DNA of 64,000 bases from Octopus sinensis (taxonomy: Eukaryota). Shown here one piece after another: positions 48,552 through 55,993 of the stretch. Under the pieces are notes generated by a model, which was given only the letters and a program-made list of their open reading frames with translations, made no database searches and was not told the origin of the DNA. Position 1 is the stretch's first letter. Each line of letters opens with the position of its first letter. A program made the position numbers and the translations under genes. The stretch spans positions 32,116,001 to 32,180,000 of the forward strand of contig NC_043006.1 in assembly GCF_006345805.1 (NCBI RefSeq), written 5' to 3'.

Positions 48552-49799
48552 ATGGCTTCATCTGTAAAACGACTTCAGACTTTGTTCATAGTCTTGTTAA
48601 TCGTTATAAGTGTTCAGTTAGTAAAACCAGAACAACTCACCAATCTAAAGCGACGGGATCTGAAGGATAATCTCCAGTCTTTGTATGATTTATTCGCTGA
48701 TAACTTCGATGATGACGACAATGGCTACGCTAACGATGACAATGGTAATGAGGCCGATGGTGACGTGTCCAGGTTAGAAACGGTACCGCCTTCGTCATGG
48801 TATAACTTCGACGATGACAATGATGATGACAACAATGGCTACGCTCGCGATGACAACAGTAATGAAAGCCCCTCTGAATACGGCTCTGAGGCCGATGGTG
48901 ACGTGTCCAGGTTAGAGACGGTACCACCTTCGCCATGGTATAACTTCGACGATGACGAAGTTGACACGAGCGACAGCTATGATTACAAATACGACAACGA
49001 CAACGAAAGCGGCTCCGGGGACGATGAAGATATATCCACGTCAGGGACGGTATCGCCTTCGACATGGTATTACATGATCACCGATAGGACGACTTCACCA
49101 ACTGACAGGACGTTAGAAAGAAAGAATTTCTCAAACGATAATATGCAAGAAGGAAATGAAGGGGGAAGAGAAAGAGTAGGACAAGTACTGGTGCCAAAAC
49201 AACTTCAACAAGACTGGCAAGAACAGCAACAAAAGCAAGGGGAATATCAAAGAGTAGGATTAGAAACGCAGGAACAAACACAACAAGAACAGCAGCAACA
49301 GCAGCAGCAGTGGCAGCAGCAGCAATATCAAACAGGAGAACAACAACAGCAACAACAAACGTCTTTGAATTCATCTGTTATTGCTAATTCTAATGCTACG
49401 TATCAGGGTTCTTCGGCTTTTGTCAGCAGCCAAAAGCTAGGATCATCAAGTACCACTGAGTCAGCAGCGTCGAACAAGAGCAGCTACAGGAGCAATAGTA
49501 ACGAACAATCAAATCCTCTCTGTTCAACTGAAGTAGACCTCTACGATTTATGTAATCTATCGATGTATCCCGGAGGTGTTTCTTATGCAAACCCCTTTAC
49601 GTTTCGCTTATTGGAAAACGCCATTTCCCATAATACGACGAGGCAGTCTCTGAAAAGTTGCCGACCAGGACATTGGTGTCTCGGAACCAATGTCACAGAG
49701 GGAAAACTTGAAAACTTTCCGAGGCATTTCTGCTGGTCCTCTCTGCTGACGTGCCTTGATATTGTAGTGGAGCAGTTAAAAGTTTGTCCTGCATATCAG
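48552..49799 (+). CDS. Exon 1 of an uncharacterised secreted protein (signal peptide, Asp-rich repeats, Gln-rich region, start of Cys-rich domain)
   Basis: 416 open codons of non-microsatellite sequence; signal-like MASSVKRLQTLFIVLLIVISVQLVKP; seven N-x-S/T sequons; donor CAG|GTGAGT, phase 0. Confidence 0.85.
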
Positions 49800-50413
49800 G
49801 TGAGTTCGGTTCTGTTCAGTGGGAATTGAATATTGTTGGTTGTTGTTGGTGTTTTAGTTTAGCCTCCGCTCAGCCTTGATTAACCATGATCATCCAGTGT
49901 TTTCAGGAGTATCTGGATTTAAATCTGTACTTCATAACAGGCTTTTCCGGAGTCCTAGTGTTTCGTGGCAGTTTGCTATGCAGAATCGTGATAAATGGAG
50001 AAATTATAAGCAGCTGGATCTTGGAGTTATTTTCGTTTTTACTTCTTATAACCTGTAATTATATTATACCTGTATAGAATACTCGCTCGGGAAATCCTCT
50101 CCTCTGTAAGTAGCAAGGAAACATTATGAAGAAAGTTGGTTAAGAGGAAATTTCTAAAACCTTTGTGATGCTTGATAGCCTTAGCAGTTGTAACCCTTTA
50201 AAAGATATTTAATGAATTTTTAATCCCTTGTGAATTTTAACTTTGTGAAAAGCCTATAAATTATTAAAATATATAATAATTCTTAAAGATATATAATAAT
50301 TTTAACCTATCGGTTCCGTGAGACATGGAATGCATTTCAAGGACTTCAAAAGAGTAAAAAAAAAAAAGGAAATAGTGGGTAATATTCTCCAATGTACCTT
50401 CCTCTTATTTCAG

Positions 50414-50460
50414 ACAGTAGGATGGGATTATCATAAGATTTTGCGGTTATTTTTAGCAAG
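50414..50460 (+). CDS. Exon 2 (47 nt) of the same gene
   Basis: Acceptor ctcttatttcag, donor AAG|GTGAGT; reads TVGWDYHKILRLFLA+AG, phase 0 in and phase 2 out. Confidence 0.7.
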
Positions 50461-51254
50461 GTGAGTGAGGGTCATCTGGAGACTCTCGCACTAACCTGTT
50501 GTCAATTTACTAGCTAACAATAATTCGAAAAGAATCAATCTATATCTTTAGTACATTTTCCCCGTTCATTTTTTGGATTGGTTGTTGAGATATCAAAGTG
50601 ACCATTGCTGCTTCTTGTTGTTCCGCTTCATTTCATCGTTGACTGCGTTTGGTGTTTCGACTGAAAACGTTCTTTATCAACACTTTTTATCAGATCAAGC
50701 TGCTACACAAAGGTACCAACATTGTTGTTGTTATTATTGCTCTGTTAAGCATATTTTGTTTATTTACTGAGTTTTGCGGACGGGGCAGTGCTCATGACTT
50801 TTTCTGGTCCTTCGGGACTCTTCGAACTCGATGCCATCAGCGTTCTGCTTAAATTGCTGTAGGTCAACACATGCCAGAAAGACATGAGCATCGCAGAAAG
50901 GATTCCAGAGGAAGAGAGATCTTTTTAAGGAGGTGGACTAAGAGTGGTCAGTCTGGTACAAGGGTGGGGCCGTAACAAGTTTGGCAAAAGTGGCGGGGGA
51001 GACAAGTAGGTCGGGGGTGGGATGGGTGAGTGGAAGATATATAAGATTAGCCATCTCTGAAGGAGCGAGGCAATTATTATAGCAATAGAAAAAAAAAGGA
51101 GAGTCGGGGCAGAACGCCTGCGACTAGAAGTTAATAGGAGTTCGTTGATGATTAAAAGCCATTCAGTCAACTAACACTTCCCTGTATGCTGTTCGGATAT
51201 CCGGAATGTCCGTAGCTACAACAAACACTGCCCGGTTGTGGGAGCGCTTCACTA

Positions 51255-51572
51255 TTGTGGGATTCACTCGAGCTTTGTGGAATGTTATCACGTGATCAGA
51301 TGATCGACTATCAGATGTTGTTACACATCGCTAGTCACAATGTGCTTTGCATTCTTTTAGCTTTCGAACGATATCTCTGCGCTGGTTGGGCGAGCTGGTC
51401 AACATTTGCCCCTGGTTGGAAGATTACTTCATCCCTCAGTTTGCAGCTGAGTGGACGGGAGCAACATGAAATAAAGTGCCTTGCTCAAGAACACAAGGCG
51501 CGATCGGTCTGGGAATCGAAACCACGATTTCACGATCGAGAGAGCAATACTCCTAACCTCTAGGCCAGGCGC
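51255..51572 (-). mobile_element. tRNA/CORE-like SINE, group C (intron 2)
   Basis: gggaatcgaaacc head; ctgagtggacgggagcaacatgaaataaagtgccttgctcaag core; tail shared with 15005. Confidence 0.85.
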
Positions 51573-53803: not shown

Positions 53804-53994
53804 TATATATGCCTGTCTATCTATCTATCTATCTATCTATCTATCTATCTATCTATCTATCTATCTATCTATCTATCTATCTATCTATCTATCTATCTAT
53901 CTATCTATCTATCTATCTATCTATCTATCTATCTATCTATCATTCTCTCTCTCTCTATCTCGCCATCGGGAGTGCAACATCCTCACACAAGACA

Positions 53995-54200
53995 GTGCGT
54001 TGTGTTCTTGAGCAAGACACTTTATTTCATGTTGCTCGGTGATCGCTTCAGCAGCCGACGTGTGGTAGACTTGTGCACCAGTACAAGTACTGTCAGCTTG
54101 ATGGAAGGAGTGAGCTAACACATAGCACAAATATTTGATTATTGCGCAGCTTGTTCAAGAAATTGCGGAAGCCTCATCCGTCTTCTATGACAGGATTCTC
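53995..54200 (+). mobile_element. Headless CORE-like SINE, group C
   Basis: gcgttgtgttcttgagcaagacactttatttcatgttgctc followed by a distinct tail. Confidence 0.65.
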
Positions 54201-55812
54201 TGTGTCAAAAATGTAAATTAGCCAATTGGTTAATATAGGCCAAAGGTATAAGTCAAGAGAACAGTGTAGAAGCATGGCGTCTGTATAATGACTGAGACCA
54301 AGAAAGTAAATCAATATGATACGATGTTTAATGATGACTATAATTTTGCCAGTCGGATAGCTGATCATTTAGGAAGTGAATAAACGAAGCCGGTTGCGTT
54401 AAGGAAAAGCAACCACTTTTTGGGATTTGTTCTTCCCATCTTTTGTTACACCAAACATTTGCAATTTATACAATGAAACTCGCAAATAGTAGTTCAATTT
54501 ACTCGGAATAGCAGTCAAATTTCTCTCATTTCACATTCTACCATTTGAAGAAAGGAGAGGATTCACGTTAGACTATGTAATCTGTGATATACCCTCACCA
54601 AGAAAAAAAAAAAAGAAAAGAAAAAGAAAGAAAAATGGATGGCCGTAGCAAGAACAGTTTGACTGCAGTTGACTAGATTTACTGAGTACTTTAATTCAAA
54701 AAGCACCGTTTTTTTTTCCTGTGGCATTTTTGAAATTTTATTTTTTTAAATATGAGTAGTCTGTATTGTATCTGATATACCTGTGTTTTGTATGTTGTTC
54801 AAATACATGCCACTGGCCACTCTGAGTTATTTCTCTTAGTTCAGTTTTGTTTAAACACACACACACACACCCACGCAGAGAACATATACATAATCAGTTT
54901 TTGAGGGTAAGACTCGAAGTAGATAAAGCTATAAATAATAGCATATAAATATTGGATTAAAAAATCCAATATTTACATGTTTAACGTGACAGACGTTCTA
55001 CCATTGAACCAAAGCAATCCTTCGAAATTCAGATCCCATTTTAGAAGCTTTGTCCTTACCAGGCATTTTTCTATCCAAAGGGTTTTTGGCATTTTTTCTA
55101 TCCAAAATCAGTATTTACACGCTCTTATTTATAACTTTATTTTCTTCAAGTGCAACCATTAACAATCAATTATTTCATGTCTTTCGAAGTTTTTAATTTC
55201 TTATGAAATAAAATTAATATACTCACCCACCCACACACATCCACCCACTCACCCACATCCCCCATGCACCTGCCCATACATATATATATATATTTATATG
55301 TATATATATATACATACATATATTTATATGTACGTATATATATATATATATATATATATATATATATATATATATATATATATATATATATATATATATA
55401 TATATATATATATATATATATATATTTAAACATAATATTTTTAATTTTCATTCCTTTCGAGAATTTATCCCTAATTAGTGGTTTGAGTTTTCTACTGCTC
55501 TTTCTAGCACAAGGCTTTCCTATTTAGAAGCCTCTTAATGTGTTTTAATGTACACGATATATATATATATATATATATTATATATATATATATATATATA
55601 ATATATATATATATATATATATATATACATACATATAAATATATGTACGTATGTATATATATATATATATATATATATATATATATATATATATATATAT
55701 GTATGTATGTATGTATATGTATATACAGACATATACATATGTGTGTATAATGTGTTTTATGTCATGGCCAAATGGCTTTACGCACGGAAACATCTACATT
55801 ATAAACTTGCAG

Positions 55813-55993
55813 AGAAATTTGTAGAGTCTGTATAGACCTAGAAAATGTTGAACCTGTATACCATCCCATCATTAAATGCTGTCTCAGCGATAGTGTTTAT
55901 ACGAACAATAATTTGAGAAACCGTCTTCCTTACGATTTGGACAGCTGCATTTCCCGGCCTCTTCCATTAAATTCTGATAACGTCAAATTGTAA
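55813..55993 (+). CDS. Exon 3 (Cys-rich; probably the last coding exon)
   Basis: Acceptor aaacttgcag; only the phase-2 frame is open: (R)[59 protein letters not shown], matching exon 2's phase. Confidence 0.65.

Follow-up and report, generated by a model that had tools for sequence, protein, structure and literature searches.

The 64,000-nucleotide (nt) stretch of Octopus sinensis DNA analysed here (NCBI RefSeq assembly GCF_006345805.1, contig NC_043006.1, positions 32,116,001 to 32,180,000 of the forward strand; hereafter the window, with coordinates counted from its first letter) carries the 5' part of LOC115216475, which we read as a six-exon gene whose product is probably a 638-amino-acid (aa) single-pass type I membrane glycoprotein that, judging from its motifs, would act in the manner of a cycling surface receptor. 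The original prediction, made from the letters of the window, had read a 434-aa open reading frame (ORF) as the first exon of an unrecognised secreted glycoprotein of about 491 aa, completed by a 47-nt exon at 50414-50460 (+) and a 181-nt exon at 55813-55993 (+) and ending in a domain with 12 cysteines (Cys).

LOC115216475 is already in the annotation, yet all the models that represent it are uncharacterised. RefSeq holds XP_029641701.1 (638 aa, 'myb-like protein I isoform X1') and, by cluster look-up, isoform X2, XP_036362383.1 (600 aa). An orthologue with 98% identity, CAI9728133.1 (401 aa), is annotated in O. vulgaris, and a relative in Argonauta hians, GAB1603411.1 (740 aa), is 37-40% identical, has its parts in the same order and possesses all 14 Cys of the octopus protein. 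The word unrecognised is thus right in that none of these proteins has been characterised, but not in the sense of a new gene, since models of it exist already in RefSeq, in UniProt and in the annotation of O. vulgaris. Literature searches with the locus name and the accession numbers found nothing, and a broader one on cephalopods was uninformative.

The 434-aa ORF (48525-49829, +) is the longest non-repeat ORF of the window, has its first ATG at 48552, and does contain the true first exon. Exon 1 (48552-49799, +; donor CAG/GTGAGT at 49799/49800) comprises codons 1-416, the encoded residues are identical to those of XP_029641701.1, and both the start ATG and the donor are shared with the RefSeq model; a look-up of the unspliced ORF product gave no record. 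XP_029641701.1 is encoded on O. sinensis chromosome CM016868.1, and window positions 38552-64000 agree at 100% identity with the first 25,449 bases of that locus (L001), from which positions past the window end were converted by adding 38551. A tblastn search placed the 48 residues that follow residue 416 at 61936-62082, with 100% identity to XP_029641701.1, and direct reading gives exon 2 as 61939-62082 (+; codons 417-464, two Cys, phase 0), between the acceptor ttgacAG/AAATAC and the donor ATACCA/GTAAGT. The same exon is 45% identical to the Argonauta protein (E 4.6e-11, tblastn). Intron 1 (49800-61938, +; 12,139 nt, from a unique GT-AG exon map) holds microsatellites, a retrotransposon fragment and both of the small exons proposed earlier. 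Intron 2 begins at 62083 (62083-64000, +) and runs past the window end, beyond which exons 3 to 6 map to the window-equivalent positions 70584-70625, 76170-76237, 81722-81971 and 82638-82802. Enumeration of GT-AG sites yielded a unique six-exon solution that matches the 638-aa protein exactly. On the strength of these alignments, exon 1 is spliced across a 12.1-kb intron to 61939-62082 and then to four further exons outside the window, which makes the product 638 aa long instead of about 491.

Neither the RefSeq models nor the one from O. vulgaris contain the 47-nt or the 181-nt piece. The arithmetic behind them was sound, as 1248 + 47 + 181 nt do join in frame to give 491 aa with 12 Cys, but a great many other combinations join just as well. 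Between 49800 and 64000, where we counted 676 AG sites, 738 GT sites and 1,575 internal segments open in phase 0, exon 1 can be completed in a formally valid way by two further exons, the second with a terminal ORF of 40 codons or more, in 74,948 combinations, and 22,922 of these have at least five Cys in the last exon because TG-rich microsatellites encode Cys. The splice-phase match of the two pieces is no more than chance would give, and more generally the matching of splice phases within a long AT-rich intron carries almost no evidential weight, given some 75,000 alternatives here. Each piece is unique in the window and in L001, outside any repeat family. The 75-aa peptide that they encode together resembles neither the Octopus nor the Argonauta proteins, and when 1.84 billion representative proteins were searched exhaustively with HMMER, nothing matched residues 103-176 of the 176-aa domain assembled in the original prediction. 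A minor isoform in which exon 1, the 47-nt piece and the 181-nt piece as terminal exon encode a 491-aa protein that is soluble and has a hybrid domain of 12 Cys seems to us extremely improbable. In its favour are the in-frame joins and the good splice signals of the 47-nt piece described below; it is found in none of the four database models, its tail resembles nothing in the proteins searched, about 75,000 other completions are equally valid, its terminal acceptor is weak, and it would cut the conserved 14-Cys domain in half.

The two pieces differ in their splice signals. The donor of the 47-nt piece, AAG/GTGAGT, is the sole full-consensus (MAG/GTRAGT) donor of intron 1, and its acceptor has 11 pyrimidines among 12 positions, making the piece the best pseudo-exon of the intron and a candidate poison exon. 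Used, perhaps rarely, as a cassette exon before the true exon 2, it would bring about an early stop and so lower expression, with the 181-nt piece being no exon at all. As 47 is not divisible by three, the frame is shifted when the piece is joined to exon 2, and direct reading of the shifted frame through 61939-62082 reaches a TGA. We nevertheless regard this alternative as unlikely, since isolated pairs of good splice sites are common in long introns. The acceptor of the 181-nt piece, with pyrimidines at 7 of 12 positions, is weak and sits immediately 3' of a 465-nt AT-rich, (AT)n-like dinucleotide tract (69% matching); on present evidence the piece appears not to be part of the gene.

The exons that truly follow exon 1 change the nature of the protein. 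The Cys domain (residues 322-522, about 200 aa) has 14 Cys instead of 12, with exons 1 to 5 encoding 7, 2, 1, 2 and 2 of them. Its first half (residues 322-416, seven Cys; 49515-49799, +) is 39-40% identical to GAB1603411.1 (E 1.3e-12), and between Octopus and Argonauta the whole domain is 39% identical with 14 of 14 Cys invariant, the overall identity of the proteins being 37-39%. It is followed by a Thr/Pro-rich stalk (residues 523-591), a membrane helix (residues 592-616) with RRLK next to it, and a basic cytoplasmic tail of 22 aa, RRLKGPQDLRNQGYSKLKTGEC (residues 617-638; GYSKL...GEC), in which 14 of 21 aligned positions are common to Octopus and Argonauta, including GYSKL and the terminal GEC. 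Hydropathy analysis found only two hydrophobic segments, the N-terminal signal (residues 1-24; Kyte-Doolittle hydropathy, KD, 2.0) and the helix at residues 592-616 (KD 3.2). The ten N-glycosylation sequons all precede the helix, which together with the basic residues after it indicates a type I topology; signal peptide, C-terminal helix, RRLK and ectodomain sequons, all of them read from the sequence, are those of a type I single-pass membrane glycoprotein. Secretion, as first proposed, is wrong in view of this strong helix and the conserved tail.

Everything that had been described in exon 1 itself is present. The signal peptide, MASSVKRLQTLFIVLLIVISVQLV (about residues 1-24; 48552-48623, +), has a hydrophobic stretch with a presumed cleavage position, and a KRR site is read directly at residues 33-35. 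Three acidic Tyr/Trp repeats follow (48714-49076, +; residues 55-92, 93-138 and 139-175; DNA repeat families D1 and D3), with 28% Asp+Glu. They are two near-identical copies and a diverged one, as had been stated, their 78-nt DNA cores at 48749, 48887 and 49016 showing 100, 92 and 62% identity; a 59-nt flanking repeat occurs at 48693 and 48807 (81% identity). In the acidic region (residues 25-175), eight Tyr have at least three acidic neighbours each, for example in DSYDYKYDNDNE. The SGSG motif (residues 153-156; 49008-49019, +) lies inside NDNESGSGDDED (ESGSGDDED) and, from the acidic Ser-Gly consensus, is a candidate site of glycosaminoglycan attachment. Next come a Gln-rich segment (residues 216-270; 49197-49361, +; 55 aa, 56% Gln, with a CAG repeat at 49290-49324) and a Ser/Thr/Asn-rich linker (residues 271-321; 49362-49514, +; 41% Ser+Thr, three N-glycosylation sequons), and the last part of exon 1 contains the seven Cys already mentioned. 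The Argonauta protein also has a Gln-rich segment at the collinear position and, in the place of the linker, an NNT/NDT-repeat linker, and the two N-terminal halves show faint collinearity (E 0.11). This half of the protein, a low-complexity ectodomain of about 300 aa, is fast-evolving. Because the Cys domain and the tail are conserved where the N-terminal half has diverged, we infer that the Cys domain, the anchor and the tail form the conserved core, which is presumably functional.

This distribution of conservation bears on the idea of a matrix, proteoglycan or biomineral-related protein. The acidic repeats and the SGSG that suggested it are real, but neither is conserved in Argonauta, unlike the Cys domain and the tail, and the idea is weakened to that extent. 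In its simplest form, a secreted acidic shell or biomineral matrix protein, it was rejected: acidic repeats are present, but so are a conserved membrane helix and tail. A version that accommodates the anchor is a membrane-tethered precursor whose acidic, glycosylated ectodomain is shed into extracellular matrix or into a compartment that mineralises, for example the statolith or the beak. Besides the acidic character of the repeats and of the SGSG surroundings, the 70-aa stalk could hold a sheddase site, and acidic repeat proteins are typical of mollusc mineral matrices (for background see bioRxiv 10.1101/2021.07.10.451900). We found no mention of a comparable protein in the paper on the argonaut eggcase matrix, the Argonauta relative has neither the acidic repeats nor SGSG, and conservation is highest in the membrane anchor and the cytoplasmic tail, so that we consider shedding of this kind improbable.

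No well-characterised family was recognised, in agreement with the original prediction. At E <= 10, Pfam returned nothing but low-complexity noise, far short of the cut-offs, for the 491-aa model, the 176-aa domain assembled in it, the genuine 218-aa domain and the proteins of Octopus and Argonauta. In particular, neither the true 218-aa domain nor the full proteins matched GDNF/GAS1, Frizzled CRD, saposin or Izumo. A PDB sequence search with single sequences and with a profile found no match. Word-indexed protein searches, including one with a profile, were empty, and as they also missed the known relatives they are uninformative. The exhaustive HMMER search with the 176-aa query recovered two proteins, both aligned to residues 1-102 only; that query was the hybrid domain of the original prediction, in which only these residues, encoded by exon 1, are genuine, corresponding to about half of the true domain. 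The known relatives so far come from Octopus and Argonauta only, and the protein appears lineage-specific, as had been proposed, although a half-domain query leaves room for a wider distribution. The product of LOC115216475 would thus fit no characterised family and appears to be a lineage-restricted orphan membrane glycoprotein. Its RefSeq name was considered separately. Pfam finds no Myb/SANT domain (E <= 10) in either the 600-aa or the 491-aa form, and the 'myb-like' protein carries a signal peptide and a membrane helix. The name 'myb-like protein I' is a low-complexity artefact whose sole basis is the Gln-rich stretch, and it is misleading for annotation.

Two AlphaFold runs, one with the Octopus and one with the Argonauta sequence first, agreed on a secondary structure in which a short helix and then a hairpin at CRPGxWC precede three or four long helices, meaning that the 14-Cys domain is predicted to be mostly helical with one hairpin. 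A disulphide-rich helical luminal domain bearing glycans, a single helix and a short tail recall OSTM1, the partner of ClC-7, and the general architecture, with a Cys-rich domain predicted to be helical, would suit a role as accessory subunit to a channel or transporter; the resemblance serves as a lead only. OSTMP1 was not matched in Pfam (E <= 10), nor was OSTM1 matched among PDB sequences (single or profile) or by Foldseek with a low-confidence model, and OSTM1 has nothing that corresponds to the long disordered N-terminal half, leaving such a role very unlikely.

We therefore return to the single-pass type I membrane glycoprotein with receptor-like cycling, which we consider probable. The protein would reside in the plasma membrane or in endosomal membranes. 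Its fast-evolving, anionic and glycosylated N-terminal tip, possibly Tyr-sulphated and possibly bearing glycosaminoglycan, might serve as an extended brush, a spacer or a charge-based arm for ligand capture, while the disulphide-locked domain adjoining the membrane would be the conserved binding module. Sulphation of Tyr in an acidic context and glycosaminoglycan attachment at acidic Ser-Gly sites are established modifications. A GYxxΦ motif (Φ, bulky hydrophobic residue) in a short basic tail is a classical adaptor-binding signal for endocytic and lysosomal sorting, and the Gly-Tyr-x-x-Leu of the octopus tail may likewise recruit clathrin adaptors, leading to cycling between the surface and endo-lysosomes. 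No finding hints at an unusual mechanism for this product. More far-reaching is the proposal that the 14-Cys domain represents a new disulphide-rich helical fold and would define a family of surface receptors confined to octopods, in which a fast-evolving anionic arm, sulphated or glycosylated, is combined with a conserved endocytic tail. We put it forward tentatively, as it is more likely wrong than right; if true, it would amount to a lineage-specific recognition or uptake receptor. For cephalopod biology, the gene is a further example of a taxon-restricted membrane protein whose Cys-rich domain is unclassified, and its importance hinges on the site of expression.

Several points weigh against the receptor-like reading. 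The proposed six-exon structure has as its basis the RefSeq and O. vulgaris models and conservation across genera, and the putative function is deduced from motifs only. The acidic repeats and SGSG are not conserved in GAB1603411.1, and this Argonauta model, which begins without an N-terminal signal peptide, is probably 5'-incomplete. The structure prediction used a three-sequence alignment as input and is of low confidence, with a predicted local distance difference test (pLDDT) score of 44 with Octopus first and of 38 with Argonauta first, and a Foldseek comparison of this low-confidence model with PDB gave nothing below E 4. Finally, in LAMP-type proteins the sorting motif is at the extreme C-terminus, whereas the octopus GYSKL is not.

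The 5' end of the gene differs among the models. CAI9728133.1 of O. vulgaris begins with two different upstream exons and lacks a signal peptide. Both have counterparts in the window, at 15552-15603 (+; 95% match, intact ATG, open frame, canonical splice sites) and at 31335-31426 (+; 91% match, open frame, canonical splice sites), and in CAI9728133.1 they are joined in frame to an acceptor, tatcAG/GGT (49406/49407), within exon 1. These upstream exons may belong to a transcript with an alternative 5' end, or the model may be a chimera produced by annotation. Upstream of the start codon of exon 1, by direct reading, a possible TATA box, TATATAAG, is found in an AT-rich stretch at 48468-48475 (+), 77-84 nt 5' of the ATG, and would imply a short 5' untranslated region inside exon 1. 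As for RefSeq isoform X2, it differs from X1 by a 114-nt (38-aa) gap within 48718-48845 (+) that corresponds to exactly one repeat register. A canonical intron was rejected as its cause: the gap can be placed in 15 equivalent ways, and in none of them are its ends GT-AG or GC-AG. For this reason isoform X2 is probably a repeat-copy-number variant or an alignment artefact, and not a splice form.

The window as a whole is AT-rich animal DNA with many microsatellites and transposon fragments. Within intron 1, simple repeats occupy 51611-51701, 51921-52213, 52348-52540, 53816-53960 and 55276-55740, being respectively (CA)45, a 61-75-nt tandem unit with CA-run ends, (TATC)n with (TCTC)n, (TCTA)37 and an imperfect (AT)231; they give rise to many spurious ORFs rich in Cys, Tyr or Ile. 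A retrotransposon fragment of the long interspersed nuclear element (LINE) type with the zinc-binding reverse-transcriptase domain zf-RVT (59733-60614, +; E 2e-8) also lies inside intron 1, and a second one is found at 26305-26757 (+; E 6e-7). Between the copy in intron 1 and the one farther upstream (26210-27424), identity is about 93%. On the opposite strand, three consecutive ORFs of 120, 266 and 129 aa (21373-23664, -), the last with a weak, sub-threshold GIY-YIG match (E 0.003), may be what is left of a decayed Penelope-like element.

Three comparisons can be drawn with known membrane proteins. Clusters of Tyr amid Asp and Glu on a mucin-like type I membrane protein recall the sulphotyrosine tips of PSGL-1 and GPIb-alpha, to which the sequence is unrelated; in the octopus, the acidic Tyr repeats are lineage-specific and their sulphation is hypothetical. 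Syndecans are likewise type I proteins with a disordered ectodomain, acidic-flanked Ser-Gly near the N-terminus and a short conserved cytoplasmic tail, but they have no Cys-rich domain, and their Pfam family, with its conserved transmembrane and cytoplasmic C1-V-C2 region ending in EFYA, was not matched; the octopus tail is unrelated and lacks that end. Of the syndecan type of Ser-Gly site there is one in Octopus, ESGSGDDED, and it is not conserved in Argonauta. The CD164/endolyn sialomucins were not matched in Pfam either. The octopus Cys domain, with 14 Cys in about 200 aa, is much larger than theirs, the N-terminus of the protein is acidic and Gln-rich, and since GYSKL is followed by KTGEC the YxxΦ motif does not form the C-terminal end. 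In architecture, the octopus protein nonetheless resembles this family, whose members are type I proteins in which Ser/Thr-rich glycosylated segments flank a Cys-rich domain and a short tail carries a Gly-Tyr-x-x-hydrophobic motif.

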